Assembly: GCF_032191835.1 (NCBI RefSeq)
Contig: NC_083226.1
Span: 21,762,001 to 21,826,000 of the forward strand
Direction: 5' to 3'
DNA length: 64,000 nt
Origin: Heteronotia binoei
Lineage: Eukaryota
In this document: in pieces, positions 2,201 to 46,109 of the stretch
How positions within the stretch are numbered: position 1 is the stretch's first letter
Layout of the letters: each line of letters starts with the position of its first letter
Translations under genes and position numbers: made by a program
Notes under the pieces: generated by a model
Databases searched by the model: none
Told to the model about the DNA's origin: nothing
The model's input: only the letters and a program-made list of their open reading frames with translations

Positions 2201-2268
2201 ATGCAAATATTGCTAGGAAGGATTGCACTACCAAATCTATAGCCTGATGAGAGATGTCAAATTTGCAT
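2201..2268 (-). promoter_or_regulatory. Paired inverted POU octamers upstream of TAS2R (1066-2007)
   Basis: ATGCAAAT at 2201-2208 and ATTTGCAT at 2261-2268; position conserved across paralogs. Function inferred. Confidence 0.6.
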
Positions 2269-2277
2269 AGTCTACCG

Positions 2278-2379
2278 ATCTTTGTATCTGAGTTCAGAAG
2301 GGGTGATGTGGTGCGGTATGTATGTACACAATCTTTGTATCTGAGTTCAGAAGGGGTGATGTGGTGCGGTATGTATGTA
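2278..2379. repeat. 53-bp tandem duplication (2 copies)
   Basis: ATCTTTGTATCTGAGTTCAGAAGGGGTGATGTGGTGCGGTATGTATGTA at 2278 and 2331. Confidence 0.9.
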
Positions 2380-2694
2380 GGATCTGTTGATTTAAAACTA
2401 ATATTTGCCAAATTCCATCGGAAAGGCCTTTCTATCCATTTGTCTAAAGGACTCCCTGACTTTGCGAGGAAAGTTGTTTTGATTAGTTGGATACTCGAAA
2501 CAGAACATTAAATTTTGCATAAATGAATGGAGTGTCGTCCACACATGAAGAGCAGGGCAAACAGAAGGGGAACTTTACCATAAAAAAAGCATTGGTTCTT
2601 CAATATCAGTATAGTTCATTCTGTCTGGCAGCAACCATCATCTCAGGTCTTTCACATCACCACTTCAATGAGGCTTGTATTAGGAGAGCATCTT

Positions 2695-3335
2695 AAGAAC
2701 ATAAGAACATAAGAGAAGCCATGTTAGATCAGGCCAATGGCCCATCCAGTCCAACATTCTGTGTCACACAGCGGCCAAATATATATATACACACACACAC
2801 ACACACACTGTGGCTAATAGCCACTGATGGACCTCTGCTCCATATTTTTATCTAAACCCCTCTTGAAGTTGGCTATACTTGTGGCCGCCACCACCTCCTG
2901 TGGCAGTGAATTCCACATGTTAATCACCCTTTGGGTGAAGAAGTACTTCCTTTTATCCGTTTTAACCTGTCTGCTCAGCAATTTCATCGAATGCCCACGA
3001 GTTCTTGTATTGTGAGAAAGGGAGAAAAGTACTTCTTTCTTTACTTTCTCCATCCCATGCATTATCTTGTAAACCTCTATCATGTCACCCCTCAGTCGAC
3101 GTTTCTCCAAGCTAAAGAGCCCCAAGCGTTTTAACCTTTCTTCATAGGGAAGGTGTTCCAGCCCTTTAATCATCCTACTTGCCCTTTTCTCCAATGCTAT
3201 AATATCCTTTTTGAGGTGTGGTGACCAGAACTGCACACAGTACTCCAAATGAGACCGCACCATCGATTTATACAGGGGCATTATGATACTGGCTGATTTG
3301 TTTTCAATTCCCTTCCTAATAATTCCCAGCATGGC
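2695..3335 (-). mobile_element. CR1 LINE 3' fragment (RT C-terminus + 3' tail)
   Basis: ORF 2814-3332 ...LEYCVQFWSPHLKKDI...ERLKRLGLFSLEKRRLRGD..., typical of CR1; (AAGAACAT)n tail; near-identical to 46812-47485. Confidence 0.92.
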
Positions 3336-3385
3336 TTGTGGGGTTATGCTCCAAGAGTCCTCTCACTATGATGCTTTGGGAGGTT

Positions 3386-4303
3386 TTAAGATGATGCTTC
3401 ACTCGGATGGCATTTTAAGTGACGTAGCGTCTGCATCCATGTCAGTTTCAGCTTGGGACTAATTATTATCAGGATAATGGCATGTCCAGAGGGATATAGG
3501 ACACCCACAATTCCTAAAAGTATAGATATCCAATTCTGCTCATACTTTCTCCTGGCCAATGTGGACCTCAAAGTGACCGCAACAAAACTGGAGAGGTACA
3601 GTATAGCGAAGGAAACCAGAGCTTTGATGGCAGTCAGGTGAACTTGTGTGCTGAGATCCTTGATGCCAGTTCCATTGTGTTGTACTTGTCTTATGTGCTT
3701 CCAAAGAGAGCTTATTAGGAAGACAGACGATAACAAAAATATCACAATTGGAATGAAGTTGGGGGCAGTAGACACAATAGTGAAGTTAAGGATTTCTGGA
3801 TTGCTGCTGCTGCTGAAAAGGGACTTGTAGGGATTGCAGATGGAGAAGTCAGGTCCCCAGGCTGTGATAACAATAATAGTCACAACAGCAGAGAAGACCA
3901 TCGAGCCCAAAAGCAGCCATGGGACCAGTCCAGAGAATATTTGCTTCATTTGGAGGAAAAAAGGGTGAGAGAAGATGGTGATCTTCACAAAGTACAAAAC
4001 ACTCAGTGAGGCAGCAAACCAAAGGCTCACATTGTTCGTAAAAATCCACATGATGTTGATGATTAACTGCATCTCATTCAGGATGTAGGTTTGCTTAAAA
4101 AAAGAAAACATAGTAGTTGCATTCAAAATAATGACCATCTCCAATAGAACTCTTGACAGCCCGAGGGAGCTCAGGATAAGGTCAGTTGGGGATAATTTTC
4201 TGCTTCTGAACCAGTCCATGTAAATGATGAGGACAATAGATCCATTTGATACCTTTCTGATTAGGGTATTTATAAGCAGAAATCCAAAGTCAAATAGTGG
4301 CAT
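3386..4303 (-). CDS. TAS2R: Bitter taste receptor (TAS2R family), intact, 305 aa
   Basis: Same TAS2R motifs. ATG at 4301-4303 follows TTCAGAAAG. ECL2 is shorter than in paralogs. Confidence 0.9.
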   Translation of the reverse strand: MPLFDFGFLLINTLIRKVSNGSIVLIIYMDWFRSRKLSPTDLILSSLGLSRVLLEMVIILNATTMFSFFKQTYILNEMQLIINIMWIFTNNVSLWFAASLSVLYFVKITIFSHPFFLQMKQIFSGLVPWLLLGSMVFSAVVTIIVITAWGPDFSICNPYKSLFSSSSNPEILNFTIVSTAPNFIPIVIFLLSSVFLISSLWKHIRQVQHNGTGIKDLSTQVHLTAIKALVSFAILYLSSFVAVTLRSTLARRKYEQNWISILLGIVGVLYPSGHAIILIIISPKLKLTWMQTLRHLKCHPSEASS

Positions 4304-4459
4304 CTTTCTGAATGCAGGAGAAACAGTGATATGTCTGCTGTGACGTTTACACTTACTCCAATGCCACCTTTTCAGTGCTATCAAAACCACAGATCACACC
4401 ACTTTGGCCTATTTATGTACAAAAACATCTGGAAAGGCTGGAGCTGTTTTCCGCTGTTG

Positions 4460-4467
4460 ATGCAAAT
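4460..4467 (-). promoter_or_regulatory. POU octamer upstream of TAS2R (3386-4303)
   Basis: ATGCAAAT ~157 bp upstream of ATG. Confidence 0.55.
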
Positions 4468-5541
4468 ATTACCAGAAAGGATTCTGTTACCAGATTTGTA
4501 TCTTGCTCTAACATGTCAGATTTGTGTATTCTACAGAGATGTTAAAAGTGACCTTTGCATCCATCTGCACATACCATTGTGGGATTTGATGGCTTAAAAC
4601 AAATGTTTGCCAAATCCCATCTGTTGCTATTATTTACATGAGTTTGAAAGGTCTCTCTATTGATTAGTCAAGACTGTGTTATGAAAGTTGTTCAAATTAG
4701 TTGATTAGTTGAATAATTAAAGCAGACTGTTGAACGTGCATATAAATAAGTGATGTTTCCACATACTATGGGGGTGGGTGGAGAGAATTTATCATGACTG
4801 GAAACTTTACAAGCAGGGCTTGTAGCCAAATACATTCACAGATGGACTATAGGAGGGGAAATGCATATTCCCTCCCAGCTCCAACTTCATTCCAATGGAT
4901 CCCTAAGTGTTCACTTTCCCAACTGTTCACATTCCCAAGTATTCACATTCCCAAACCATTCAGTAAGGCTTGCATTAGGAGGACATCTTGTGGAACTGTG
5001 CCCCAAGTTTTGTTTTGTTTTTTTGGTCCTTATAGAAGAGAATGTCCTCTCCGTAGGGTCTTTTGGGAGGTTTCAAGATGGTGCTTTCTCACAAATAGGC
5101 AACTTTGTAGCCCTATAATAGCAATTATATTATGACAACGCAATGCCCTTAAAGGGAAACATCCATATACAATTAGAAATACATTTCACCTTGCTGCATA
5201 AAGAGTCTCATTACAAAGATCTTCCGTCATGATGTAAATAAGCCCAATAGAAGAAAAGTCAATTCAAGGGACTGGTTTCAGTTTCAAAAACCTTCATCAG
5301 CCAAGGCTTTAGCTTTGCAGTTTAGTACACCATGGCTTTAAGCCACATAAAGAAAAGATACCTTGCTATTTGAAGCACCAGTCTTTCATATTTAGGACAA
5401 AAGTTCCATTATTTTCTGGGTGGTAATTGCTTCTCCAAGGGCTTTGTTGTTGTCATAATATAATTGCTATTATAGTGCTATGCAGTTTGCTATTTTTTCC
5501 TGTCTATGTGAAACTGTGGTTCTTTATTGCTGTAAGCTTTC

Positions 5542-6446: not shown

Positions 6447-6616
6447 CTTTCTGAATACAAAAGAAACAGCAATAATTTTGCTGTGACGTCCACACTTTTC
6501 CTAATGCTGTCTTGTCAGTGCTGTGAACACCACACAGCTCAACACTTGGGCCTTCTATTTATGTACAAAAACATCTGGAGAGGTTGGTGTTGGTTTCCAG
6601 TGTCAACCCTGCTGGA

Positions 6617-6687
6617 ATGCAAATACTACTGGAAAGCATTTTGCTTTCCAGTAATATATATCTCGTTCTAATATGTCAGATTTGCAT
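6617..6687 (-). promoter_or_regulatory. Paired POU octamers upstream of the TAS2R pseudogene
   Basis: ATGCAAAT 6617-6624 and ATTTGCAT 6680-6687. Confidence 0.55.
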
Positions 6688-7098
6688 ATTCTACAGAGAT
6701 GTTAAGTGCAGTATTTGCCTCCGTCTTCACAAATGATGGTGCAGTGTTCTTGTGGCATGTGTTTAGCTTAAAATAAATGTCTTGCCAAATTCCATCTGTT
6801 ATTGTTATTTTGGGGGGGGGGGGTTGTAGCAGGAACTCCTTTGCATATTAGGCCACCCCCCCCCCCCCGATGTAGCCAATCCTTCAAGAGCTTACAGGGC
6901 TCTTCTTACAGGGCCTACTAGTAAGTTCTAGGAGAATTAGCTATATCGGGGGGGGGCATGTCTAGCCTTATGCAAAGGAGTTCCTGCTACAAAAAAAGCC
7001 CTGATTTATTTTCATGAGTTTCAAAGGCCTCTGTATTGATTGATTGAGACTTTGCCACGAAAGTTGCTCTAATTAGTTAATTAATTGAACACTTAAAA

Positions 7099-12790: not shown

Positions 12791-13215
12791 AAGAACATAA
12801 GAGAAGCCATGTTGGATCAGGCCAATGGCCCATCCAGTCCAATACTCTGTGTCACACAGTGGCCAAAAAACCCAAGTCCCATCAGGAGGTCCACCAGTGC
12901 GGCCAGGACTACTAGAAGCCCTCCCACTGTGCCCCCCCCAAGCACCCAGAATACAGAGCATCACTGCCCCAGGCAGAGAGTTCCTACGATACGCTGTGGC
13001 TAATAGCCACTGATGGACCTCTGCTCCATATGTTTTTTTCCAATCCCCTCTTGAAGCTGTCTATGCTTGTAGCTGCCACCACCTCCTGTGGCAGTGAATT
13101 CACCCTTTGGGTGAAGAAGTACTTCCTTTTATCAGTTCTAACCCGACTGCTCAGCAATTTCATTGAATGTCCATGCATTCTCTTATTGTGAAAAAAGGGA
13201 AAAAAGTAAAAGTAC
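12791..13215 (-). mobile_element. CR1 LINE 3' fragment
   Basis: Same AAGAACATAAGAGAAGCCATGTTGGATCAGGCC tail and RT C-terminal remnant. Confidence 0.85.
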
Positions 13216-13462
13216 AATGCACAATTCCTTAGTACTTTGGGGGAAAGTACATTTTTAACTATATTAATAAATAATCCAGACCTTCTCCAGCTAAAAAATC
13301 TAATTTCTACTGATGACCACAATCATTTGCTTATGAGGAGATCCACTGTCATAATTCAATGGTGCTTGCCCGAAGAATTCCTCAGTGTATCATTCCCCAA
13401 GAGTACATCAAGCTCCATCTTGCAGGAGAGAATGTCCTCTCCCAAAGATAGGTTGGTTGGTT

Positions 13463-14395
13463 TTAAAATGGCACTTTACCCACACAACATTTTAAGTGCT
13501 GTATCATCCTGACCCATGCTTGTTTCAATTTAGGATTAATTAATATCAGGATTATGGCATGTCCGGAGGGGTACAGAGAACTCACATTAAAGAGCGGAGC
13601 TGTCGAGGTGTATTTGTTGCCCCAGACCAGTATTATTTGTAAAACAAACGCTGCCAAACTGATCAGGTAGAGAACTACAAAGGAAGCCAGAGCTTTGATG
13701 GCACTCAAATGTGCCTGTGTGTTGAGATCCCCCGTTCCAGTTCCATTGCATCGAACTCTTCTCATGTGCTTCCACAGAGAACTTATTAACAAGATGGATG
13801 ATGACAGAAACACCACTAAGGGGATAAAATAGAAGAAACCTAATAGAGCAATGGCATTCCTACATTCATATGAGATGTTCATTTCTGCATTGCTCCTGTT
13901 GTTTGAAAGTGATACGAGGGGATTGCAGGTATAGATGCCATAGTTCCAGCTTGTAGTAAGAATAATAGTCTTGACAGCTGAGGAGATCACTGAGCCCAGA
14001 AGGAGCCAGGGTACCAGCCCAGAGAACCGTCGCTTGACTTGGAGAAAAAGAGGGTGGGAGAAGATGGCGATCTTGGCTAAGTAGAAAACACTGAGGCAGG
14101 CAGCAAACCAAAGGTTCACAATGTTCACAAATATCCATATGCCCGTCAAAGTATATGCTGAGTTGCTCAGTGAATTGTTAAGCAAAATAAATAGAGTTAC
14201 CTGAAGAATCACTGTTGCCTGCAGCAAAAGTCTAGATAAGGCAAAACAGATCAGGATCAGGTCTATCGGGGACAATTTCCTGCTTCTGAACCAGTCAATA
14301 AAATTAATGAGGAAAATAGATCCATTCGCCACCATCCCAATGAGGATTTCCAGAACCAGAAGTACAAAGCAGAGTATTATGAATAGGATAGCCAT
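13463..14395 (-). CDS. TAS2R: Bitter taste receptor (TAS2R family), intact, 310 aa
   Basis: Full 7TM TAS2R motifs; ATG 14393-14395 after TTCAGAAAG (an in-frame ATG lies 12 codons upstream at 14431). Confidence 0.93.
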   Translation of the reverse strand: MAILFIILCFVLLVLEILIGMVANGSIFLINFIDWFRSRKLSPIDLILICFALSRLLLQATVILQVTLFILLNNSLSNSAYTLTGIWIFVNIVNLWFAACLSVFYLAKIAIFSHPLFLQVKRRFSGLVPWLLLGSVISSAVKTIILTTSWNYGIYTCNPLVSLSNNRSNAEMNISYECRNAIALLGFFYFIPLVVFLSSSILLISSLWKHMRRVRCNGTGTGDLNTQAHLSAIKALASFVVLYLISLAAFVLQIILVWGNKYTSTAPLFNVSSLYPSGHAIILILINPKLKQAWVRMIQHLKCCVGKVPF

Positions 14396-14562: not shown

Positions 14563-14570
14563 ATGCAAAT
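14563..14570 (-). promoter_or_regulatory. POU octamer upstream of TAS2R (13463-14395)
   Basis: ATGCAAAT ~168 bp upstream of ATG. Confidence 0.55.
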
Positions 14571-14837
14571 GTTATCAGGAAGGACTTGATTACTAGCACA
14601 ACAATCCTCAGGTGAGTTCTACTTATCTAAGCCCACTGTCTTTAATGGATTTTGATGGGAGTAACTCTTTTTAGGATTGCACTGTAAACCCATACCCTCT
14701 TCTGAAATGTCATCTTTGCATATGCTGCAGTGATGGTAAACATGATCTTTGCATTTGCTGTCAGATATGTTGATGTGGTATTCTTGAGAGATTTGTTGAC
14801 TTGGAATATTTTTGAAGTTCCATCTATTGGACACAAG

Positions 14838-23116: not shown

Positions 23117-23761
23117 NNNNNNNNNNNNNNNNNNNNNNNNNNNNNNNNNNNNNNNNNNNNNNNNNNNNNNNNNNNNNNNNNNNNNNNNNNNNNNNNNNNN
23201 NNNNNNNNNNNNNNNNNNNNNNNNNNNNNNNNNNNNNNNNNNNNNNNNNNNNNNNNNNNNNNNNNNNNNNNNNNNNNNNNNNNNNNNNNNNNNNNNNNNN
23301 NNNNNNNNNNNNNNNNNNNNNNNNNNNNNNNNNNNNNNNNNNNNNNNNNNNNNNNNNNNNNNNNNNNNNNNNNNNNNNNNNNNNNNNNNNNNNNNNNNNN
23401 NNNNNNNNNNNNNNNNNNNNNNNNNNNNNNNNNNNNNNNNNNNNNNNNNNNNNNNNNNNNNNNNNNNNNNNNNNNNNNNNNNNNNNNNNNNNNNNNNNNN
23501 NNNNNNNNNNNNNNNNNNNNNNNNNNNNNNNNNNNNNNNNNNNNNNNNNNNNNNNNNNNNNNNNNNNNNNNNNNNNNNNNNNNNNNNNNNNNNNNNNNNN
23601 NNNNNNNNNNNNNNNNNNNNNNNNNNNNNNNNNNNNNNNNNNNNNNNNNNNNNNNNNNNNNNNNNNNNNNNNNNNNNNNNNNNNNNNNNNNNNNNNNNNN
23701 NNNNNNNNNNNNNNNNNNNNNNNNNNNNNNNNNNNNNNNNNNNNNNNNNNNNNNNNNNNNN
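23117..23761. other. Assembly gap (N)
   Basis: Run of N; further gaps at 53967-54391 and 55587-55959. Confidence 0.99.
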
Positions 23762-23869
23762 GCCAGCCGCCCCCCCCCCCCGCGCTTTTGGCTTACCTGG
23801 ATCCAGGGCGGTGGCGGCCTCTCCTCCGGGCTGCTGGCGGGGCTGGCGGCGGCTGCGGAGGCCGGAGAG

Positions 23870-24392
23870 GCCGGCGCTGGTCTCTGGAGGCCTCCAGGGA
23901 CCAGCGCTGGCCTCTCCACGCTGCCTCCGCTGGTCTCTGGAGGCCTCCAGGGACCAGCGCAGGCCTCTCCACGATGCCTCCGCTGGCCTCTGGAGGCCTC
24001 CAGGGACCAGCGCCGGCCTCTCCACGAAGCCTCCGCTGGCCTCTGGAGGCCTCCAGGGACCAGCGCCGGCCTCTCCACGAAGCCTCCGCTGGCCTCTGGA
24101 GGCCTCCAGGGACCAGCGCCGGCCTCTCCACGAAGCCTCCGCTGGCCTCTGGAGGCCTCCAGGGACCAGCGCCGGCCTCTCCGCTGCCGGCGCTGGCCTC
24201 TGGAGGCCTCCAGGTTCCAGCGCCAGCCTCTCCACGCTGCCGGCGCTGGCCTCTGGAGGCCTCCAGGGACCAGCGCCGGCCTCTCCACGCTGCCGGCGCT
24301 GGCCTCTGGAGGCCTCCAGGGACCAGCGCCGGTCTCTCCACGCTGCCGGCGCTGGCCTCTGGAGGCCTCCAGGGACCAGCGCCGGCCTCTCC
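23870..24392. repeat. GC-rich ~53-bp minisatellite
   Basis: GGCCTCTGGAGGCCTCCAGGGACCAGCGCCGGCCTCTCCACGAAGCCTCCGCT and variants, ~10 copies. Confidence 0.93.
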
Positions 24393-24646
24393 GGACCCCG
24401 CGCGCGGGCGGGGAAGGCGGGGAGTGAGGCAGCCAGCGTCCCTGCGCGTGCGCACACAGCTGTGCGCACGCGCAGGGACGCTGGCTGCCTCACTCCCCGC
24501 CTTCCCGGCCCGCGCGCGCGGCCCCCCGGCTCCCCGCTGGCTATACCGGGACTTTGTAATGGTCCCGGTATAGGCAGCCCGGGAGCCGGGAATTGGTGGC
24601 CAGAACCGGGAAAGTCCCGGGAGACCGGGACGGTCTGGCCACCCTA

Positions 24647-25372
24647 ATTGGCAAGAATAATTGTCATTATTCGTATCTAATGGTTCCCATCTTGTGGATA
24701 TTTCTAAACACCACCACATCTTGGTTTGCCACCTGGCTCAGCGTTTTCTACTTGGCAAAGATCGCCACCTTCTCCCACCCTGTTTTCCTCCAAGTGAAGC
24801 AAAGATTTTCAGGACTGGTGCCCTGGTTGCTTCTGGGATCAGTTGTCTTCTCTGCTATTACGACTCTTGTTGTGGTCGCAAGCTTGAGCGACGGCTTCTC
24901 TATGTGTGATTCCAACAAATCATTTTTAAACATCAGTGATTCAGAAATTACACCCCCTGACTTATATATGTACCTAGCTTTTCTAGCTGCTGTCCCAAAT
25001 CTCATTCCTTTAATGATATTTTTGTCATCGTCTGTCTTGTTAATGACTTCTCTGTGGATGCACACAAGACGTATGCAACGGAATGGAATTGGCATCAATG
25101 ATCTCAGCACTCAAGCTCACATGACTGCCATCAAAGCTCTGGCTTCCTTCGCTGTTCTGTACCTGTCTAGTTTTTTAGCAGACACTGCTCAGGCAGTAAT
25201 GATCTGGAAAAACGTGGGTGACACTTGGCTATTTATGATGCTTAGTATCATAACTGTGTCTTGTCCTTCTGGACATGCCGTTATCCTGATACTACTAAAT
25301 CCCAAACAAAAACAGGCATGGGTCAAGATGCTGCTTCTCTTAAAATGCTGCTCTGGTGAAGTGCCTGTTTAA
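24647..25372 (+). pseudogene. TAS2R: 5'-truncated TAS2R (ECL1 to C-terminus), fused to a transposon end
   Basis: Homology to the 29488 gene starts abruptly at ATTGGCAAG, directly after the TIR ...GGCCACCCTA. TM1-TM2 are absent and the remaining frame is open. Confidence 0.85.
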
Positions 25373-27921: not shown

Positions 27922-29311
27922 GCAAACTAAGTTGTAAATAATGAATCTCACACACACACAAAAAGAAATTTTAACTAGCCTATGTGACACAAGCTGAGCT
28001 GGGGCTTCCCTGATCTAGGTCGCATTCACAAATACCATTGCAGGACTCACCTGTCAAAGTGTAATTGCATGTGGAGGCTCATGAACTTTGCAAGAGGGGA
28101 GGGGGGAGGCTTCAGGCTTCCTTCCTGTGCTGTTTTCCTAAATTAAAATCAGCCACGAAGGGGCCAGTTCTCCCTTTCCGCGTGTCCTCAGATTATGTAA
28201 CACATGGTGCCCATCAAAGGGGCAAAGAGCTCCCCTGAGGACATTTCTGTGAGGAAAAAGAGCACAGGAAGGAAGCCTGAAACCTCTTTCTCCCCCTCAC
28301 AGCACTCAGTAGCCTGTACAAGGAAGAAAAGCTTTGGCAGGTGAGTCAAATGTTTTACAGGGGAAAGCTTGTAAGTTGCTTCAATGTTTTTTTCTCTGAC
28401 CATAGGAGCAGAATAAGGTGACTGGGGTGCTGTTGGGGGATTTTGGAGCTCAGGAGTATTTCTAGGACCCTCAGTTCGCTTGAGTTATTTTATTGGTTGG
28501 GTGGAGATTGGCAAGGGGCTTGAATTCAGTAAAAAGAGAGGCAGTTGTACTAAAACAAAACTACTTCATTTCATTGCAAGCCTTTAGGATAGAAAACACT
28601 TCATTATAAAATCTTGAACACAGAAAACCTAACTCCTCAATATTCAGCATATCATCTCATAATTCATTGGACCTAGACATACGTCTTCTGGGTGAGGATC
28701 TCCTCAACATGGAAGTGACAATCAACCCTGTGTTTCATTACCTAGGAGGACTCCAGATACTTCTGCCTTTACTCTGAAACAGTCCATCGAGACTGTGCTC
28801 ATGAAACTAAGCCAGAGCCACCTGAAGCTGAATCCACACATGACAGAGATAATGCTAGTCAGTAATGCCAAAGAAGCTCTTTGGAACATCTGGATAACCT
28901 TGTGATGGCAAATGCACAACAGTTTAAGACACTGGAAGTGCCCATGAGCCCAGCTTTGCTGTTTGTTTCTATCAGCTACATTTGCATCACAGGTTTCCCT
29001 CCTTTCTTTGCTTTTTCCACAATAATCCATGGTTTTGTACCTTGGCTAGTTTTCTGTAATGGACTCTATGTTGGGCTGCCCTAGAAAATGCCTGGGAGAA
29101 GGCTACTGGTGCAGAATTCAATCAAATTAATAACTAGTAATAATAGATGGATTTGGGGTAATGTCAATTTCAAGAAAACAAATCCCAAAAGAAGAGTGCG
29201 TCTCCATTTGTAAAGATGGATGCACATATATTCAGCATCTCTGTCGAATGCGGAAATATGAAATATCAGAACAGGATATCGCTATACAGTAACTCAACCC
29301 TTTCTGGTAAG

Positions 29312-29319
29312 ATTTGCAT
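29312..29319 (+). promoter_or_regulatory. POU octamer upstream of TAS2R (29488)
   Basis: ATTTGCAT 169 bp upstream of ATG. Confidence 0.55.
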
Positions 29320-29487
29320 CTCAACAGTGTCAACACTAGAAAAGAGCTCCTGCCTCTCCAGACGTTTTTCAGTTCCTAAATCAAAGGCTGCAGCGTTGTG
29401 TTCTACTGGGTCGATATCACTGAGAGGACAGCTTGGGGCAAACTGCAAACATTACAGAAGAAACAGTTTTGTTTTGTGCTCAGAAAG

Positions 29488-30426
29488 ATGACATCCATAC
29501 CAATGATAATCAGTTGTGTACTTCTGGTTATTGAAACCCTTGTTGGAATGGTTGCAAATGGATTTATTGTCCTCATGACTTGCATTGACTGGTTCAGAAG
29601 CAGGAAACTATCCCCAAATGACCAGATCTTGACCTGTCTTGGCTTGTCCAGACTTCCATGGCTGGGATTTGAAATTCTGCATATAACTACAGTCTTCTTT
29701 TCTATTTTCAAGCATAATTGCCATTATTTATATTCAGTGCTTCCCACCTTGTGGATATTTCTAAACACCACCACATTTTGGTTTGCCACCTGGCTCAGCG
29801 TTTTCTACTTGGCAAAGATCGCCACCTTCTCCCACCCTGTTTTCCTCCAAGTGAAGCAAAGATTTTCAGGACTGGTGCCCTGGTTGCTTCTGGGATCAGT
29901 TGTCTTCTCTGCTATTATGACTCTTGTGGTCGCAAGCTTGAGCAACGGCTTCTCCATGTGTGATTCCAACAAATCACTTTTGAACATCAGTGATTCAGAA
30001 ATTACAACCCCTGACATATATAAAAACCTAGCTTTTCTATCTACTGTCCCAAATCTCATTCCTTTAATGATATTTTTGTCATCATCTGTCTTGTTAATGA
30101 CTTCTCTGTGGATGCACACAAGACGTATGCAACGGAATGGAACTGGCATCGAGGATCTCAGCACTCAAGCCCACATGACTGCCATCAAAGCTCTGGCTTC
30201 CTTCGCTGTTCTGTACCTGTCTAGTTTTTTAGCAGTCACTGTTCAGGCAGTAATGATCTGGAAAAAAGTGGGTGACACTTGGGTATTAGTGATGCTTAGT
30301 ATCGTAACTGCCTCTTGTCCTTCTGGACATGCCGTTATCCTGATACTACTAAATCCCAAACTAAAACAGGCATGGGTCAGGATGATGCTTCACTTAAAAT
30401 GCTGCTCTAGTGAAGTGCCTTCTTAA
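29488..30426 (+). CDS. TAS2R: Bitter taste receptor (TAS2R family), intact, 312 aa
   Basis: Full TAS2R motifs; ATG after CTCAGAAAG. Confidence 0.94.
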   Translation: MTSIPMIISCVLLVIETLVGMVANGFIVLMTCIDWFRSRKLSPNDQILTCLGLSRLPWLGFEILHITTVFFSIFKHNCHYLYSVLPTLWIFLNTTTFWFATWLSVFYLAKIATFSHPVFLQVKQRFSGLVPWLLLGSVVFSAIMTLVVASLSNGFSMCDSNKSLLNISDSEITTPDIYKNLAFLSTVPNLIPLMIFLSSSVLLMTSLWMHTRRMQRNGTGIEDLSTQAHMTAIKALASFAVLYLSSFLAVTVQAVMIWKKVGDTWVLVMLSIVTASCPSGHAVILILLNPKLKQAWVRMMLHLKCCSSEVPS

Positions 30427-34344: not shown

Positions 34345-34970
34345 TACTATGGTACTCTTAACAAAGAGCTTGTTATCACTGATCCTGAGACTGCGTAGAA
34401 AACACTTATACATTACTTATACAATATAAGTAATGCCAAAGAGGCAAATGCAGAACAATTTAAGATCTTGGGGGTATCCATGAACCTAGAAAGGGCAGCT
34501 TCTGGGAGAGCTCTCTCAGCCCCACCCACCTCCCGGGGTGTCTGTTGTGGGGGAAGAAGATAAAGGAGATTATGAGCTGCTTTGTGAATCAGAGAGAAGT
34601 ATAAATCTTCTTCTTTTGCTGTTTGCTTCCATCAGTTACATTTGCATAAAAGGTTTCCTCCTTTCTTTGCCTTTTTCACAATAACCCATGGTTTTGTACC
34701 CTGGCTAGTTTTCTGCAATGCATTCTATGTTGGGCTGCCTTAGGAGATGCCCAGGAAAGGGTTACCTGTGCAGAATTCAGTCAAATAAACAACTTGTAAT
34801 AATGAAAGGATTTGGGTAATATCAGTTTCAAGAAAACAAAGCCCAAAAGAAGAGTGCCTCTCGATTTGTAAACAGATGCTCTATCATATTCAGCATCTCT
34901 ATCTAATGTGCAAATATGAAATATTAGAAGAGGATATAGCTATACAGTAACTCAACCCTTTCTGGTAAAG

Positions 34971-34978
34971 ATTTGCAT
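34971..34978 (+). promoter_or_regulatory. POU octamer upstream of TAS2R (35147)
   Basis: ATTTGCAT 169 bp upstream of ATG. Confidence 0.55.
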
Positions 34979-35146: not shown

Positions 35147-36085
35147 ATGACTTCCATACCAATGATAATCAGTTGTGTACTTCTGGTTATTGAAGTCCTT
35201 GTTGGAATGGTAGCTAATGGATTTGTTGTTCTCGTGGCATTCATTGACTGGTTCAGAAGCAGGAAACTATCCCCAAATGACCAGATCTTGTCCTGTCTTG
35301 TCTTGTCCAGACTAGTATGGCTGGCAGTCATGACTTTGTATACAACTAAGTTCTTCTTTCCTACTGGCAAGTATAATTGTCATGAATATCTAATACTTCT
35401 GATCTTGTGGATATTTGCAAGCACCACGAATCTTTGGCTTGCCACCTGGCTCAGCATTTTCTACTTAGCAAAGATCGCCACCTTCTCCCATTCTGTTTTC
35501 CTCCAAGTGAAGCAAAAATTTTCAGGACTGGTGCCCTGGTTGCTTCTGGGATCAGTTGTCTTCTCTGCTATTATGACTCTTGTTGTGGTCACAAGCGCGA
35601 GCAATGGCTTCTCTTTGTTTGATACCAACAAATCACTTTTGAACATCAGTGATTCAGAAATTACACCCCCTGATGTATATATGCTCTCAGCTCTTCTAGG
35701 TACTGTCCCAAACATCATTCCTGTAATGATACTTTTGTCATCATCCATCTTGTTAATGACTTCTCTGTGGATGCACACAAGACGTATGCAAGGCAATGGA
35801 ACTGGCATCAAGGATCTCAGCACTCAAGCTCACTTGACTGCCATCAAAGCTCTGGCTTCCTTCGCTGTTCTGTACCTGTTTAGTTTTTTAGCAGTTATGG
35901 CTCAGGCAGTACTGATCTGGCATGATATGACTGGCACTTGGCTATTTATGATGTTTAGTATCTTAACTGTGGTTTGTCCCTCTGGACATGCCATTATCCT
36001 GATACTAGTTAATCCCAAACTCAAAGAGGCATGGGTCAGGATGCTGCTTCACTTAAAATGCTGCTCTAGTGAAGTGCGTGCTTAA
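35147..36085 (+). CDS. TAS2R: Bitter taste receptor (TAS2R family), intact, 312 aa
   Basis: Full TAS2R motifs; close paralog of 29488 and 44475. Confidence 0.94.
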   Translation: MTSIPMIISCVLLVIEVLVGMVANGFVVLVAFIDWFRSRKLSPNDQILSCLVLSRLVWLAVMTLYTTKFFFPTGKYNCHEYLILLILWIFASTTNLWLATWLSIFYLAKIATFSHSVFLQVKQKFSGLVPWLLLGSVVFSAIMTLVVVTSASNGFSLFDTNKSLLNISDSEITPPDVYMLSALLGTVPNIIPVMILLSSSILLMTSLWMHTRRMQGNGTGIKDLSTQAHLTAIKALASFAVLYLFSFLAVMAQAVLIWHDMTGTWLFMMFSILTVVCPSGHAIILILVNPKLKEAWVRMLLHLKCCSSEVRA

Positions 36086-36424
36086 AACCCGCCACTAGAC
36101 CTTAGAGATAGGACATTCTCTTTTACAAGAAGGACCCTAAAAACTCTTGCAGCACAATCCTACAGGAAGCTCTTCATGAGTAGATATGCTATTCTTCTTT
36201 TTTCAGAGAAACATGTACAAAGGGTGATCCCTCCTTTCTTTGCCTTTCCATGTACAAGAGCTAGATCCATGACATGATTTCATGTGCAAAAGATAGATCC
36301 ATGACAGAATTCAGACCTGCTGGCTCTATGGAGTTCATTTTAAAACTCCAAAAGGCCCCCTCCCTGTGCGAAACCCTCTGGATTTCTGCCTGTGTCTTAT
36401 TTGTACCCTGATATTTGTAAAGTA

Positions 36425-36610
36425 TCATTCCTTTAATGATACTTTTGTCATCATCCATCTTGTTAATGACCTCTCTGGATGCGCACAAGACGTATGCAAG
36501 GCAATGGGACTGGCATCAAGGATCTCAGCACACAAGTTCACCTGAGTGCCCTCAAAGCTCTGGTTTCCTTCACTATTCTGTTCCTGGTTAGTTTTTTAGC
36601 AGTTATGGCT
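36425..36610 (+). pseudogene. TAS2R: Isolated TAS2R fragment (TM5-TM6)
   Basis: Diverged copy of CATTCCTTTAATGATACTTTTG...GCAGTTATGGCT with a 2-bp deletion; flanked by the direct repeat CTGATATTTGTAAAG. Confidence 0.8.
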
Positions 36611-36625
36611 CTGATATTTGTAAAG

Positions 36626-38974: not shown

Positions 38975-41900
38975 TGTAATGTACTGGGAGACGAGACGTG
39001 GTAAAGGCATTGGTCTTTAATCGCTGGTACATTACAGAACTGGGGAACACGCGGCCGGGTCCGCTAATATATACATGCACCCCGGATCAACCCCCCTGCT
39101 GGCCAGCCCAATCCTGGCCAGTTAAACTTCCCGCGCTTGGTCTTGATTGGCGGTGACTTTTCCCGCGCTGCGCCAGGTAACCCAAGGACGTCCCGGCTTA
39201 CGCGGCGCGGGTGCAGAGTCCGATACTCAACACTCCTCCCCCCTTAGTTTAAACCACATAGTCCCGGAGGTACGCCGGTGCTCTCCGTTCCCGTGTCGAT
39301 CTCCTCGGGGTCGCTCTTGGTGCGGAGGCTGGTTCCGTTGTGGGCGATGCTGCTTCTGGCTGCGGGATGTTGGGGTCTGTTTCAGGCTCCGGCTCTGGTT
39401 CGGTGTCTCTGGGGGCGTCATAAGTGGGTAGTTCCTGTATTGGCGAGCGCCCTTCCGGACCTTCGGTTGCCCGCGGTTCCCTATTCCCTACCTCCTCTGT
39501 TTCTTCGGGTAGGGTGCGGCGGCGCAGCTGATCTATGTGCCGCCTTAGTACCTGGCCCCCTTCGGTGGTCACCTCGTATGACCTGGAACCTGTCACCCTA
39601 AGGACTCTCCCCGCGACCCACTCGGGACCGCTTGCGAAGTTCTTCGCGTATACCGGGTCACCCGGAAAGAACCCCCGCACCGCCTCCCGGACCTCTGGGG
39701 ACCCGCGGACCTCGGGGGCCCGGTCGGGGTGCAGCCTGTCTAGGCGTGTTGTCAGTTTCCTCCCCATAAGCAGTTCTGCGGGGCTGGATCCCGTTATAGG
39801 GTTTGGGGTGATCCTGTTGTGGAACAGGAAGGCTGAGAGGCGGTGGTCCCAATCCCCTTGTACTATTCTCCCCAGTGCTTCCTTGGTGGTCCGCACCATC
39901 CGCTCTGCCTGGCCGTTGGTGGCCGGATGGAAGGGTGCGGATCTTATGTGTCGTATGAGGTACCTCTCCGTGAACTCCCGGAATTCCCGGGAGGTGAATG
40001 CAGTACCGTTATCCGTCACCAGGGTGTCTGGGATCCCGTGCGTGCATAGGACCCTCCTGAGTGCCCGGACGGCTGCTGCTGTGGAGGTCGAGGCTACTGG
40101 AATCACCTCCAGCCATTTTGTGTAGGCATCCACAAGTATAAAAAAGATTTGGCCCTGATACGGGCCTGCAAAATCTAAGTGGAGGCGGGACCATGGTCGC
40201 CTGTTAGACTCCCATCTGTGGACCGGGGCTGATGGGGGATCGGGCCGGGATTCTTGGCAGGGTTGGCACCTCCTCACCCACCCCTCTATCTCCTCATCCA
40301 TGCCCGGCCACCACACATAACTACGGGCCAGGGCTTTCATCCTCACGATGCCCGGGTGGGTCTCGTGGAGGTCTTCCAGCACCTGCTTGCGCAAGGGGGG
40401 GGGAACCACCACCCGGCTGCCCCAAAGCACACACCCCTTGTGGGTTGATAGCTCGTCCTTCCTGGACGCGAACGGCCTGAACGCGTCTTCGACTTTGCCT
40501 GATGGCCACCCCCTCCCCACCCAGTCCCTGACCCGTGCCAGGATGCGGTCCCTCCCTGTTGCCCGAGCCACCTCCGCCGCGTGCAGGGGGCGCTCGGGGA
40601 GCGATTCAATGAGCATTACCCCATGTGCAGGGGCGGGATCCGGTTCTGTCATGGGGAGCGGCAGGCGGCTGAGGGCATCGGCGTGTCCCATGGCTTTACC
40701 CGGGCGGTGGACCAGTTCATACGTGTAGGAGTTCAGGAACTGGTTCCACCTCAGGACCCTCTGGGATAGGATTTGGGGGGTCTGACGGTCTGGAGCTAGG
40801 AGGCCCAGGAGCGGCTTGTGGTCCGTGGCGATGGTGAAACGCCTACCGTAGAGGTAGTCGTTGAACTTGTGCACCCCCGCCACGATCGCCAAGGCCTCCT
40901 TGTCAATTTGAGCGTAGTTCCGCTCCGCTGGAGATAGAGTCCGTGAATAGTACGCGACTGGCACTTCCCTCCCGTCCGGGAGTTGGTGCCCCAAAACCGC
41001 TCCTACTCCGTAGGGGGAGGCGTCGCAAGCTAGGATCAGGGGTAGGTTTTCGTCGTAGTGGTGAAGTACCGCGTTAGAGACCAAGAGGTCCTTCACTGCT
41101 TGGAACGCCGCGGCTTGGCGTTGGCCCCAGACCCACGGGGCCTGTTTATCCAGCAAACGGTGCAACGGTTCCGCTACGGCGGCTTTGTGCGGTAGGAACG
41201 TGTGATAAAAGTTCAACAATCCTAAAAAACTCTGTAGTTCTGCCTTGCATTTGGGCGCAGGAGCCTGGACTATGGCCCTGGTCTTGTCCGCCGTCGGGTG
41301 TATTCCCGCCGCGTCCACGGCGAACCCCAGGAACTCCACTCGCGGGACCCCTAACAAACATTTCTCCTTTTTGACTCTCAGCCCCGCCGCTTGGAACCGC
41401 CTGAGGACCTCGCGCAGGCGGCAGCAGAACTCTCCTTCATTGGGGGCGGCGATTAAAACGTCGTCAAAGAAGGGTTGAACTCCGGGGATCCCTTTAAGGA
41501 GAGAGTCCATGATGCTCTGGAATATCCCCGGAGCCACACTGACCCCGAACTGCAGCCGTTTAACCCTGAACGCGCCCCTGTGGGTCACGATCGTCTGCGC
41601 CTCCGCTGTCTTAGCGTCGACCGGCAGTTGCTGGTATGCTTGTGCTAAGTCCAGCTTCCCAAAAACCTTCGCCCCGGCTAGCGCTGCTAGGACGTGGCTG
41701 ACCACCGGGACTGGGTAGGGGTTGTCTTGTAGCGCCTTATTGATCGTGCACTTGTAGTCAGCGCAGATCCTCACCTCCCCATTGGGTTTGACGGGCGTTA
41801 CTATGGGGGTTTCCCATTCCGCGTATGTTACCGGTTCTAGGACGCCCTGGGCCGTTAGGCGGTCCAGTTCTGCCTCTATTTTCGGCTTAAGGGCGAACGG

Positions 41901-43592
41901 GACGCGCCTCGCTTTAAGCCTTATGGGCCTGACCATTGGGTCAATCGGTAGGGTGATGGGCGGACCCTTATAGCTCCCCAAAGACCCATCAAAGACCTCG
42001 GGGAACTCTCGGCAGACCCCGTCGAAATTGCTTGCCTGCAAGTGGTCCACCCCCACCAGCTGGATCCCCAGGGGATTGAACCAAGCCAACCCTAGAAGTG
42101 TGGTCAGTTGGCGCTTGACCACTAGGATGTCCAGGGGCCCTCTGAAACCCCTTCTTTCCACATGCACCCGGGCCCACCCCACGATGTGTACTGGGTTCTT
42201 CTGAAAGTCCCTCAGTACGAAGTCCGCTGGCCTCGTTTGAAGGCGGCGGTGGGGGCATAGTTTCTTGAGGGTTTCCTCCGAAATGATGGAGATGGAGGAA
42301 CCCGAGTCCACTTCCATGGTGCAGGGGGCGCCCTCGATTAGGACCGACATTTTGACCTTGTCTGGGGCCGATAGGGGCAAGTTCAATACCTGCAGAGTGG
42401 TGGATGCCGTCGTGTGGGTGTCCAGGGAGTCGTGATGCGCTGATGGTTGTCGGCGGCTGTTCTTGGCCCGGCAAGCCCAAGCGATGTGGCCCGTCTTTCC
42501 GCAGCTGCGGCAGTCCAGGTTGCGGTACGGGCAGTCCCGGCGCTCGTGGGGGTCGCCGCAGCTGGCGCACCTGGGACCGGTGGTGGCGGTGGCCCTCTCC
42601 GTCGCTCGCTGTCTAGTGGGGGCCCTTGTGTCCGTTCTTTGGGGCCGCCGGAGTTGAAACGCTTCTTCCTCTGTTCGGTCTTCTGGCTCCGTTTCCCCTT
42701 GGTGGACTGCTTCACCTCGTGGCTGGCCGAACGCCTTGGTGGCCCTCTCGAAGGCCGTTGCCTCGTTGAAGGCTTGTTGTAGCGTTAGCTCCTCCTTCGC
42801 GAAGAGCTTCTGCTGCAATCGCTCGTCGCGGAGGCCCCAGACGAAACGGTCCCGCAGGGCTTCGTCCCTTTTGTCAAAGTTGCAATTTCCGGCGATCTGC
42901 CGAAGGGCCGCCAGGTAGACCGCCGCTGTCTCCCCCGACTTTTGGTCCCTCTTGTGGAAGAGGAATCGGCGGGCGACGATGGACGGTTGGGGTGAAAAGT
43001 GGCCCGTGAGGAGCCTCACGACTTCCCGGTAGGTCCTCTCCGTCAGCTTAGCTGGAGCGGAGAGACCTCGTGCGATCTCGAAGGTCTCTTCGCCACAGAC
43101 GCTCAGCAGGACGTCTCTCTTTCTCTCGTCATCGTCGATCAGGTTCGCCCGCAGGTAGCACTCGACCCTTTCGGTGTAGGTCTCCCATCTCTCGGGGTGC
43201 TCCGGGTTGAATTCCGCAAGATGGCCCGTCGTTACGCTCGAGTTCGCCATGGTGGCGGCGGGCTGCCCGATCCTGCGGTCTCTCGCCTTCCTCGTCTCCG
43301 GCCGGACCTATCTAGATCCCATCCTCGTCGCCAGTGTAATGTACTGGGAGACGAGACGTGGTAAAGGCATTGGTCTTTAATCGCTGGTACATTACAGAAC
43401 TGGGGAACACGCGGCCGGGTCCGCTAATATATACATGCACCCCGGATCAACCCCCCTGCTGGCCAGCCCAATCCTGGCCAGTTAAACTTCCCGCGCTTGG
43501 TCTTGATTGGCGGTGACTTTTCCCGCGCTGCGCCAGGTAACCCGAGGACGTCCCGGCTTACGCGGCGCGGGTGCAGAGTCCGATACTCAACA
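38975..43592 (-). mobile_element. Full-length Ty3/Gypsy (Mag-like) LTR retrotransposon
   Basis: 258-bp LTRs (38975-39232, 43335-43592) with one visible mismatch; TSD GTAGC; 18-nt PBS at 43316-43333 complementary to the 3' end of tRNA-Ser(GCT); PPT at 39233-39245. Confidence 0.97.
39249..43250 (-). CDS. Gag-Pol polyprotein, 1333 aa, single intact ORF
   Basis: Two CCHC-type knuckles (CASCGDPHERRDC, CRSCGKTGHIAWAC), protease DSG, RT FFDD, RNase H LACDAS...TDHKPL, integrase HHCC and DDE (LDFAG, TDNG, AER). Confidence 0.96.
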   Translation of the reverse strand: MANSSVTTGHLAEFNPEHPERWETYTERVECYLRANLIDDDERKRDVLLSVCGEETFEIARGLSAPAKLTERTYREVVRLLTGHFSPQPSIVARRFLFHKRDQKSGETAAVYLAALRQIAGNCNFDKRDEALRDRFVWGLRDERLQQKLFAKEELTLQQAFNEATAFERATKAFGQPRGEAVHQGETEPEDRTEEEAFQLRRPQRTDTRAPTRQRATERATATTGPRCASCGDPHERRDCPYRNLDCRSCGKTGHIAWACRAKNSRRQPSAHHDSLDTHTTASTTLQVLNLPLSAPDKVKMSVLIEGAPCTMEVDSGSSISIISEETLKKLCPHRRLQTRPADFVLRDFQKNPVHIVGWARVHVERRGFRGPLDILVVKRQLTTLLGLAWFNPLGIQLVGVDHLQASNFDGVCREFPEVFDGSLGSYKGPPITLPIDPMVRPIRLKARRVPFALKPKIEAELDRLTAQGVLEPVTYAEWETPIVTPVKPNGEVRICADYKCTINKALQDNPYPVPVVSHVLAALAGAKVFGKLDLAQAYQQLPVDAKTAEAQTIVTHRGAFRVKRLQFGVSVAPGIFQSIMDSLLKGIPGVQPFFDDVLIAAPNEGEFCCRLREVLRRFQAAGLRVKKEKCLLGVPRVEFLGFAVDAAGIHPTADKTRAIVQAPAPKCKAELQSFLGLLNFYHTFLPHKAAVAEPLHRLLDKQAPWVWGQRQAAAFQAVKDLLVSNAVLHHYDENLPLILACDASPYGVGAVLGHQLPDGREVPVAYYSRTLSPAERNYAQIDKEALAIVAGVHKFNDYLYGRRFTIATDHKPLLGLLAPDRQTPQILSQRVLRWNQFLNSYTYELVHRPGKAMGHADALSRLPLPMTEPDPAPAHGVMLIESLPERPLHAAEVARATGRDRILARVRDWVGRGWPSGKVEDAFRPFASRKDELSTHKGCVLWGSRVVVPPPLRKQVLEDLHETHPGIVRMKALARSYVWWPGMDEEIEGWVRRCQPCQESRPDPPSAPVHRWESNRRPWSRLHLDFAGPYQGQIFFILVDAYTKWLEVIPVASTSTAAAVRALRRVLCTHGIPDTLVTDNGTAFTSREFREFTERYLIRHIRSAPFHPATNGQAERMVRTTKEALGRIVQGDWDHRLSAFLFHNRITPNPITGSSPAELLMGRKLTTRLDRLHPDRAPEVRGSPEVREAVRGFFPGDPVYAKNFASGPEWVAGRVLRVTGSRSYEVTTEGGQVLRRHIDQLRRRTLPEETEEVGNREPRATEGPEGRSPIQELPTYDAPRDTEPEPEPETDPNIPQPEAASPTTEPASAPRATPRRSTRERRAPAYLRDYVV

Positions 43593-44248
43593 GTAGCACT
43601 TCATCAGTTATAAATCTTGAACACAGAAGCCATCATTTTTCAATATTCAGCATATTATCTCATATTCATTGGACCTAGATATACATGTTCTGGGTGAGGA
43701 TCTCCTCAACATGGAAGTGACAACCAACGCTGTGTTTCATTACCTAGGAGGACTCCAGATGCTGTTGCCTGCACTCTGAAACAGTCCATCGAGGCTGTGC
43801 TCATGAAACTAAGCCACGGCCACCTGAAGCTGAATCCACACAAGACAGACACAATGTTAGTAATGTCAAAGAAGCCCTTTGGAGCAAGCGGATAATCTTG
43901 TGGTGACAAATACAGAACAGTTTAAGACCTCGGGGATGCTCATGAGCCCCGTTTTGCTACTTGCTTCCATCAGCTGCATTTGCATCACAGGTTTCCTCCT
44001 TTCTTTGCCTTTCCCACAATAACCCATGGCTTTGTACCCTGGCTAGTTTTCTGCAATGCACTCAATGTTGGGCTGCCCTAGAAGATGCCCAGGAAAGGGC
44101 TACGGGTGCAGAATTCAGTCAAATTAAACACTAGTGATAACAGATGGATTTGGAGGTAATATCAGTTTCAAGAAAACAAATCCCAAATGAAGAGTGCATT
44201 TCCATCTGTAAAAATAGATCCGCTTATCATATTCAGCGTCTGTCAAAT

Positions 44249-44319
44249 ATGCAAATATGAAATATTAGAACAGGATATCACTATACAGTAACTCAACCCT
44301 TTCTGGTAAAGATTTGCAT
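44249..44319 (+). promoter_or_regulatory. Paired POU octamers upstream of TAS2R (44475)
   Basis: ATGCAAAT 44249-44256 and ATTTGCAT 44312-44319. Confidence 0.58.
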
Positions 44320-44474
44320 CTCGACAGTGTCAACACTAGAAAAGAGCTCCTGCCTCTCCAGATGTTTTTCAGTTCCTAAATTGGAGGCCATAGCATTGTG
44401 CTCTGCTGGGTGGACATCACCGAAAGGGCAAACTGCAAACACTGCAGAAGAAACAGTTCTGTTTTGTGCTCAGA

Positions 44475-45422
44475 ATGATGGTGGCTTCCTTATTGATGAT
44501 AATCAGTTGTGTACTTCAGGTTACCGAAGTCCTTGTTGGAATGGTAGCAAATGGATTTATTGTTCTCGTGACATTCATTGACTGGTTCAGAAGCAGGAAA
44601 CTATCCCCAAATGACCAGATCTTGTCCTGTCTTGTCTTGTCCAGACTAGCATGGCTAGTGGTCATAATTCTGTATATAGCTAAGTTCTTCTTTTCTATTG
44701 GCAAGCATAATTGCCATTATGGAAATCTAATGCTTCCCTTCTTGTGGATATTTACAAGCACCACAACTTTTTGGTTTGCCACTTGGCTCAGCGTTTTCTA
44801 CTTGGCAAAGATCGCCACCTTCTCCCATCCTGTTTTCCTCCAAGTGAAGCAAAGATTTTCAGGACTGGTGCCACGGTTGCTTCTGGCCTCAGTTGTCTTC
44901 TCTGCTGTTACGACTCTTGTTGTGGTCGCAAGCGTGAGCAATGGCTTCTCTAAGTGTGATTCTAACAAACCAATTCTGAACATCAGTGATGCAGAAATTA
45001 AACCCCCTGACTTATACATGTACATAGACCTTCTAGCTACTGTCCCAAATCTTATTCCTTTCATGATATTTTTGTCATCAGTCATGTTGTTAATGACTTC
45101 TCTGTGGATGCACACAAGACGTATGCAAGGCAATGGAATTGGCATCAAGGATCTCAGCACTCAAGCTCACTTGACTGCCATCAAAGCTCTGGCTTCCTTT
45201 GCTGTTCTGTACCTGTTTAGTTTTTTAGCAGTCACTGCTCAGGCAGTTCTGTACTGGTGTGACATGACTGGCACTTGGCTATTCATGATGTCTTGTATCG
45301 TAACTGTGTTTTGTCCCTCTGTACATGGCATTATCCTGATACTAGTTAATCCCAAACTCAAAGAGGCATGGGTCAGGATGGTGCTTTGCTTAAAACGCTG
45401 CTCTAGTGAAGTGCCTTCCTAA
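44475..45422 (+). CDS. TAS2R: Bitter taste receptor (TAS2R family), intact, 315 aa
   Basis: Full TAS2R motifs; starts ATG ATG after CTCAGA. Confidence 0.93.
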   Translation: MMVASLLMIISCVLQVTEVLVGMVANGFIVLVTFIDWFRSRKLSPNDQILSCLVLSRLAWLVVIILYIAKFFFSIGKHNCHYGNLMLPFLWIFTSTTTFWFATWLSVFYLAKIATFSHPVFLQVKQRFSGLVPRLLLASVVFSAVTTLVVVASVSNGFSKCDSNKPILNISDAEIKPPDLYMYIDLLATVPNLIPFMIFLSSVMLLMTSLWMHTRRMQGNGIGIKDLSTQAHLTAIKALASFAVLYLFSFLAVTAQAVLYWCDMTGTWLFMMSCIVTVFCPSVHGIILILVNPKLKEAWVRMVLCLKRCSSEVPS

Positions 45423-46109
45423 AACCTACTACTGGACCACAGAGATAGGCATTCTCTTTCACAAGAAGGACCCTGATAAACTCTTGCAGTGCAATCCTAA
45501 AGGAAGCTCTTTATGGGTAGATATGCTATTCTTTTTTCAGAGAAACGTGTACATAGGGGTGGATGATCTCTTTGACTGGCTTTTTCAGCAGAATGAATTA
45601 ATGTACACTGATAACACATTGGTCAAATCATTCTTTTCTCTCCTTCAGAATTGATCATGTTAGAAATGCTGCTTTCAATTTGGATACAATGGCAGAAGGT
45701 GATACAGACGTGATTATAGGTATCTTGAAAAATTTATATTTCTATAGAAATACAGTTATTTTCTAGATTTTGGTATACTGAGGTCATTATCATGGATATG
45801 CTGCTAACATAAAAACTTATACATTGAAATCTTTATTACTTAGAATTTCTTTTATAATGTTCTGATGACTGTTCAGTCATCATTCGTTCTTTTATAATGT
45901 TCTGATGACAGGATATCGCTATGCAGTAACTTAACCCTTTCTGGTAAAGATTTGCATCTCAACAGTCTCGACACAGTGTCCTACCTCTCCAGATGTTTTC
46001 CTAAATCAAAGGCCATAGCGCTGTGTTCTGCTGGGTGGATATCACTGAAAGGACAGCTTGGGGCAAACTGCAAACATCACAGAAGAAACAGTTTTGCTTT
46101 GTGCTCAGA

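Follow-up and report, generated by a model that had tools for sequence, protein, structure and literature searches.

A perfect POU octamer, ATTTGCAT, lies at a nearly fixed distance upstream of nearly all bitter taste receptor (TAS2R) genes of the gecko Heteronotia binoei, where it is very likely a functional promoter element under selection; we put the probability that it is read by POU2F3 together with OCA-T coactivators at roughly 0.6. The stretch of DNA under study, hereafter the window, comprises 64,000 nucleotides of contig NC_083226.1 (forward-strand positions 21,762,001 to 21,826,000), and its TAS2R genes were defined by a listing of open reading frames (ORFs) and by tblastn. An earlier sequence-only reading of the window had placed a perfect octamer about 150-195 bp before the ATG in all eight TAS2Rs that retain their start. 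All eight coordinates proved exact, each octamer lying in the sense orientation of the gene next to it, and the distance, which we measured as 160-201 bp, was essentially right.

The eight genes are designated A to H. On the reverse strand, the proximal octamers occupy 2201..2208 (A; at -201 from the ATG at 2007), 4460..4467 (B; at -164, ATG 4303), 6617..6624 (C; at -178, ATG 6446) and 14563..14570 (D; at -175, ATG 14395). On the forward strand they are found at 29312..29319 (E; at -176, ATG 29488), 34971..34978 (F; at -176, ATG 35147), 44312..44319 (G; at -163, ATG 44475) and 45950..45957 (H; at -160, ATG 46110). The window contained 16 octamers, 14 of them TAS2R-associated, compared with 3.85 +/- 1.71 in dinucleotide-preserving shuffles, none of which reached 16 in 100 trials (maximum 9). 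When the eight upstream regions were aligned with MAFFT, the octamer was the longest invariant run, and the shared blocks AGCTCC.GCCT.TCCAGATGTTTT and ATGGAATTTGG, which the sequence-only reading had also listed, were present in the alignment.

The same arrangement was found genome-wide. A six-frame search of the 2.63-Gb assembly, in which the window lies on C4, gave 93 TAS2R matches, and 61 distinct 5′ ends could be placed. A perfect sense octamer was located between -227 and -112 at 45 of these 5′ ends (the local background rate would predict about 0.9), with a median position of -166 and an interquartile range of -176 to -150; between -250 and -100, 45 octamers were in the sense orientation and 8 were inverted. 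The perfect octamer was carried by 28 of the 32 intact genes in the main cluster and by 11 of its 15 pseudogenes. One main-cluster pseudogene had CTTTGCAT in its place, another had lost the octamer while its flanks were still 82% identical to the consensus, and in two genes of this cluster the promoter had been displaced by more than 1 kb through retroposon insertion.

We then compared the rate of change of the octamer with that of its surroundings. The region from -340 to +930 was aligned for 46 main-cluster genes, with the tree taken from the coding part; two genes with non-homologous upstream sequence were dropped, and Fitch parsimony changes were counted per column on the coding-sequence tree of the remaining 44 (tree length 5.6 substitutions per site). 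The mean number of changes was 4.45 for upstream columns, 4.46 for coding columns and 4.90 for third codon positions; because the upstream mean is close to the third-codon mean, the upstream region as a whole drifts near the neutral rate. The eight octamer columns accumulated 9 changes in total, where the upstream and third-codon rates would predict about 36 (Poisson p = 1e-7), and across the 44 paralogues the octamer thus evolved at about a quarter of the rate of its flanks. The four lowest of the 296 eight-column upstream segments all overlapped ATTTGCATCTC, the next lowest having 15 changes, and a single coding segment out of 920 was as conserved as the octamer. Five of the nine changes fell in two pseudogenes. 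The column just before the octamer changed six times, and on its 5′ side the conserved run stops at the octamer boundary. The octamer is under purifying selection relative to its flanks.

More distant TAS2Rs, only about 30% identical in protein sequence to the main cluster, have flanks that can no longer be aligned with it and have kept the octamer site. The octamer is perfect in all four genes at C4:21.987-22.009 Mb, in an isolated gene at C4:23.86 Mb and in C1:16276978, and all six further C1 genes carry CAGTAACAGAATAC followed by the one-base variant ATTTACAT. Single orthologues of the gene at C4:23.86 Mb exist in other squamates, and its upstream region was aligned over 370 columns among five species (Heteronotia, Eublepharis, Lacerta, Hemicordylus and Rhineura). 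Columns were 69% identical on average; the longest invariant run was CATTTGCATT, ahead of which the blocks CAGGTGC, TTAG and CAGTAAC were retained. Since these single-copy orthologues keep the octamer, gene conversion among paralogues is excluded as the cause of its presence.

Other species gave a similar picture. The octamer was found at all three TAS2R 5′ ends of Paroedura (-163 to -189) and at all four of Podarcis (-144 to -186), the latter with the same flanking blocks; one of three in Anolis was perfect (-197 and -147) and two had one mismatch (variants at -163 and -154). It was also present in the one locus sampled from a turtle (Carettochelys, at -221, with AGTAATAGAAT and GAAAATAGCCC), from a frog (Ascaphus, at -192, with TGTATATAGG 34 bp downstream) and from Rattus rattus (TAS2R41, at -195), and in a bird (Sylvia) all four loci carried ATTTACAT at about -200. 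With the four orthologue loci included, 15 of the 21 5′ ends sampled outside Heteronotia had a perfect octamer, for a chance expectation of 0.014 per gene. Given that the octamer occupies the same place in the frog gene and in rat TAS2R41, the module is not confined to reptiles. The presence, position and orientation of the octamer and its purifying selection were thus observed among paralogues, orthologues and distant species, and the proposal of a conserved promoter module held up: with duplication accounted for, the octamer was better conserved than its flanks in the Fitch counts, in the orthologue footprint, among deep paralogues and in other species.

Apart from this comparison, in Lacerta agilis the promoter and first codons of the single-copy TAS2R are partially duplicated in tandem (2881-3100 versus 4100-4260). 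The octamer was retained in the upstream copy and lost in the downstream copy, and in the NCBI model a splice joins the upstream copy to the body of the downstream gene.

The octamer belongs to an ordered set of blocks. In gene sense, AGTAAY is followed by 17-19 bp that include CCTTYC, by the octamer ATTTGCAT(CTC) and, after about 25 bp, by GAAAATAGCTCC, a CAGATG-like E-box and a TATA-like CTAAA/CATAAA. Among 51 genes with ATTT[G/A]CAT, 40 had GTAAY at 19-24 bp upstream of the octamer and 44 had it within 40 bp, compared with 5.8% of control windows; in the genes of the window, the AGTAAY block is 23-24 bp upstream. Two T columns of the CCTTYC block were invariant, conservation ran 3 bp past the octamer into the CTC, and most columns of the TTGAAAATAGCTCC block showed one or two changes, the E-box being under weaker constraint. 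From the octamer to the TATA-like box the distance is 50-70 bp, and the box precedes the ATG by 99-143 bp. Individual blocks were located in gene D (AGTAAT 14589-14593), gene E (GTAAC 29289-29293, AGCTCCTGCC 29345-29354 and CTAAA 29376-29380, forward strand), gene F (GTAAC 34947-34951 and CTAAA 35035-35039) and gene G (GTAAC 44288-44292, AGCTCCTGCC 44345-44354, CAGATG 44359-44364 and CTAAA 44376-44380, forward strand). For AGTAAY and GAAAATAGCTCC we considered MYB, MEF2, ETS and PAR-bZIP factors; their consensus sequences fitted inconsistently, and we therefore propose no factor for either block.

Directly before the ATG stands GCTCAGAAAG, which is among the better conserved upstream segments and looks like a 3′ splice site. 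That a short intron separates the module from the ATG was ruled out by the absence of a plausible donor and by the shortness of the space; the acceptor-like TTCAG may be used with exons located far upstream.

Additional octamers accompany some of the proximal ones. The sequence-only reading had described the octamer as often forming an inverted pair, with perfect distal sites in three genes, and those three were confirmed 60-63 bp upstream of the proximal octamer: 2261..2268 in gene A (forward strand, 60 bp), 6680..6687 in gene C (forward strand) and 44249..44256 in gene G (reverse strand). A distal inverted octamer with no more than one mismatch, placed at -60/-64 or -87/-94 relative to the proximal site, was recognisable in 25 of 39 main-cluster genes, against 9% of controls. 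The general claim of a pair stood to that extent and no further, given that the distal site was perfect in only 5 of the 39 and its columns changed at near-average rates: it is real but mostly degenerate and without special constraint. A third octamer, in sense orientation and 331-334 bp beyond the proximal one, is confined to the subfamily of genes E, F and G, where it occupies the forward-strand positions 28980..28987 (E, at -508), 34640-34647 (F) and 43978-43985 (G).

What binds the octamer, where transcription starts and how expression is affected we infer as follows. The octamer would be the core of an ancient, selectively kept proximal promoter common to TAS2R genes. [quoted passage not shown] Octamer-bound POU2F3 recruits OCA-T1/T2 only if position 5 is adenine (PMC12755459), and this adenine is kept at all perfect sites and in all variants observed (ATGTAAAT, AGGCAAAT, ATGCAAAA, ATGCAAAG and ATATAAAT). 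Type II taste cells and tuft/solitary chemosensory cells, which express TAS2Rs, require POU2F3 (PMC10781636, PMC5670347), and in the mouse the open chromatin of type II taste cells is enriched for POU-family motifs (PMC10239704).

The gecko genome carries candidates for components that such a mechanism would need. We found four class-2-like POU loci together with POU2AF1 (C12:9.009-9.019 Mb), and a class-2 POU gene at C12:12.127 Mb is an unconfirmed candidate for POU2F3; the gecko POU-specific exon scored almost equally against OCT1, OCT2 and POU2F3, the two alignments shown being identical. Three weak OCA-peptide-like matches (50-67% identity over 24-30 amino acids) lie within 180 kb of POU2AF1, at C12:8831232-8831303, 8900604-8900675 and 9056616-9056705, and are unconfirmed candidates for OCA-T1/T2. 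The human OCA-T genes are likewise arranged near POU2AF1. The mouse gene Tas2r126 is presumably the counterpart of the rat TAS2R41 sampled above. Expression of Tas2r126 has been reported in Pou2f3-positive mouse tuft cells (PMC5670347).

The main rival to POU2F3 with OCA-T is a functional octamer read by the ubiquitous OCT1 (POU2F1) or by another POU factor, as in histone H2B or small nuclear RNA promoters, with taste-cell specificity supplied by the neighbouring blocks (AGTAAY, GAAAATAGCTCC, E-box) or by distant enhancers. We regard this as unlikely, though well ahead of the explanations considered below. All class-2 POU domains recognise the octamer alike, the gecko POU-specific exons match all of them almost equally, several further blocks are conserved along with the octamer, and TAS2Rs are also reported from POU2F3-negative tissues such as heart (PMC5670347). 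The sequence itself holds no argument against this rival. Indirect evidence speaks against it, in that the taste, tuft and solitary chemosensory cells expressing TAS2Rs depend on POU2F3 and the chromatin of type II cells is enriched for POU motifs. The strict adenine at position 5 fits coactivator recruitment, yet OCA-B with OCT1/2 needs the same adenine.

Several observations weigh against a selectively kept octamer read by POU2F3. Because OCT1, OCT2 and other POU factors all bind ATGCAAAT equally well, the sequence is unable to name POU2F3. In mouse single-cell chromatin accessibility (scATAC) data, the Pou2f3 gene score was uncorrelated with the accessibility of its motif, and a repressor role was suggested (PMC10239704). 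Octamer retention did not differ significantly between intact genes and pseudogenes of the main cluster (p = 0.25), and three intact genes of this cluster have an imperfect octamer with 1-2 bp changed. In the intact gene C4:21497266 a retroposon has moved the promoter more than 1.4 kb away, and no octamer was present within 1.49 kb upstream. Finally, sampling outside the squamates is thin, and since the turtle, frog and rat evidence amounts to one locus per species, a tetrapod-wide octamer is suggested rather than established.

A very improbable explanation is that the element acts in the transcript, as part of a 5′ untranslated region or a first non-coding exon, or serves a non-POU protein, its likeness to an octamer being incidental. 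The conserved, splice-acceptor-like TTCAG/AAAGATG (GCTCAGAAAG) before the ATG and the 3 bp of conservation beyond the octamer (CTC) would be in keeping with it. However, the 5′ edge of the conserved run is the octamer boundary itself, the distance to a following TATA-like box is fixed at 50-70 bp (in the frog, TGTATATAGG 34 bp downstream), the strict orientation and distance suit a promoter site, and the NCBI models use the same ATGs. As for a functionless octamer, common only through copying at gene duplication or homogenisation by gene conversion, to which the tandem duplication of the genes (some pairs more than 90% identical) and an upstream region alignable over about 300 bp within the main cluster might lend some appeal, we give it next to no credence and rejected passive duplication on the rate test (the octamer being four times slower than an upstream region that changes at the third-codon rate), on its survival in paralogues with unalignable flanks and in single-copy orthologues of five squamates from different major lineages, and on its occurrence in turtle, frog and rat.

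An octamer-dependent promoter in the POU2F3 lineage, the reading we prefer for the TAS2Rs, is of an already known kind; what is notable is its extension to a whole receptor family and the depth of its conservation. The nearest precedent is the Oct-like motif of TAS1R4 (Nishihara et al. 2023, PMC10781636), in which the same ATGCAAAT stands upstream of a taste-receptor ORF, is conserved across distant vertebrates including lizards and is credited by the authors to Skn-1a/POU2F3; the same paper reported other novel TAS1Rs without Oct sites and made no mention of TAS2Rs. TAS1R4 is a single orthologous class-C receptor gene, whereas the TAS2R octamer spans an entire multigene family of another receptor class, with a fixed position and a quantified rate deficit. 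Immunoglobulin V-gene promoters, read by OCT1/2 with OCA-B, likewise combine a multigene family with a near-universal octamer whose distance from the TATA box downstream of it is short and fixed, and position-5 adenine is likewise needed there for coactivator docking (PMC12755459). They differ from the TAS2Rs in cell type and in the POU/coactivator pair, and in the TAS2Rs 50-70 bp separate the octamer from the TATA-like box.

The POU2F3-OCA-T1/T2 elements of tuft cells and tuft-like lung cancer share with the TAS2R promoters the DNA motif, a lineage that expresses TAS2Rs and the adenine at position 5. Described POU2F3-OCA-T sites are mainly distal enhancers of lineage genes. No TAS2R promoter was found among the described targets in the literature searched. 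Olfactory receptor genes have a common promoter code of homeodomain and O/E sites near the start site. That code likewise unites a large chemoreceptor family through shared short motifs; the motifs and factors differ from those of the TAS2Rs, for which there is no evidence of a mechanism choosing one receptor. We found no description of the octamer in TAS2R promoters in the full-text literature searched, subscription-only papers being outside its scope, and a 2025 review on bitter receptors does not discuss promoters.

Little is understood of how taste and tuft cells activate their bitter-receptor genes, and a strictly conserved octamer fixed before nearly every TAS2R offers a direct, testable link between POU2F3 and these genes. 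Tentatively, and with a confidence somewhat below even, we suggest that all tetrapod TAS2Rs descend from an ancestor with an octamer-centred promoter, and that the retention of the octamer over more than 300 million years is due to direct activation of the receptor genes themselves, and not only of the lineage, by POU2F3 with OCA-T. If this is true, the module of about 150 bp (AGTAAY, octamer, GAAAATAGCTCC and TATA-like box) would provide a promoter both compact and portable, with specificity for bitter-taste and tuft cells, and would be a cis-code for the whole family, comparable with the one that olfactory receptor genes have. The module is in any case a short candidate promoter for reporters. 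In genome annotation, the octamer could serve as a sequence mark separating expressed from promoter-less TAS2R copies, of which C4:21497266 is a natural example.

The genes of the window are as follows. Six are intact: A (1066..2007, reverse strand, 313 amino acids), B (3386..4303, reverse, 305), D (13463..14395, reverse, 310), E (29488..30426, forward, 312), F (35147..36085, forward, 312) and G (44475..45422, forward, 315). All six matched the Pfam TAS2R family PF05296 above the curated cut-off (E values of 1e-69 to 1e-77), the matches spanning nearly the whole 303-position profile, and homologues carry TAS2R names in Heteronotia and other reptiles. Gene C is a frameshifted pseudogene, and the coding sequence of H is disrupted by frameshifts and a retroposon insertion. 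Proteins A to D are about 50-55% identical to one another and to E-H, and E to G about 76-79% identical mutually. A small TAS2R fragment lies at 36421-36622. Outside the window, about 53 kb to the left of E, an inverted copy of the E-F-G-H block with 85-94% identity was found at C4:21721966-21738498 (reverse strand), a segmental duplication of the TAS2R cluster that is both large and inverted.

A 5′-truncated TAS2R copy at 24652..25366 (forward strand), whose homology to gene E starts abruptly at about codon 74 of E, owes the loss of its 5′ end to a repeat-built element, within which lies the assembly gap at 23117-23761. This run of N lies outside all eight TAS2R promoters and is not adjacent to any of them, and the octamer claim is independent of continuity across it. 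The right flank of the gap (23762-24646) is a repeat array with a 53-bp period; copies about 90-94% identical occur at 53116-53966 and 55986-56352, flanking the gaps at 53967 and 55587, and the array is probably the reason for the assembly breaks at all three N gaps of the window.

Other features of the window include a 664-amino-acid ORF with an ATG at 61535-63529 (forward strand), which lies in a region of strong GC skew and had no Pfam match. The 3′ part of one retroposon, with an ORF ending in ...KRGLDKNMEQRSISGY, is copied at 2814-3332 (reverse), 46761-47381 (forward) and 12984-13322 (reverse); one such copy breaks TAS2R H, and another, with a (TA)n run, parts the intact ORF of C4:21497266 from its promoter. 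Between TAS2Rs F and G, a Ty3/Gypsy-type long terminal repeat retrotransposon occupies 39249-43250 (reverse strand), with a GC content of 58-60% and a single uninterrupted gag-pol ORF of 1333 amino acids in which Pfam identified reverse transcriptase, RNase H and integrase.

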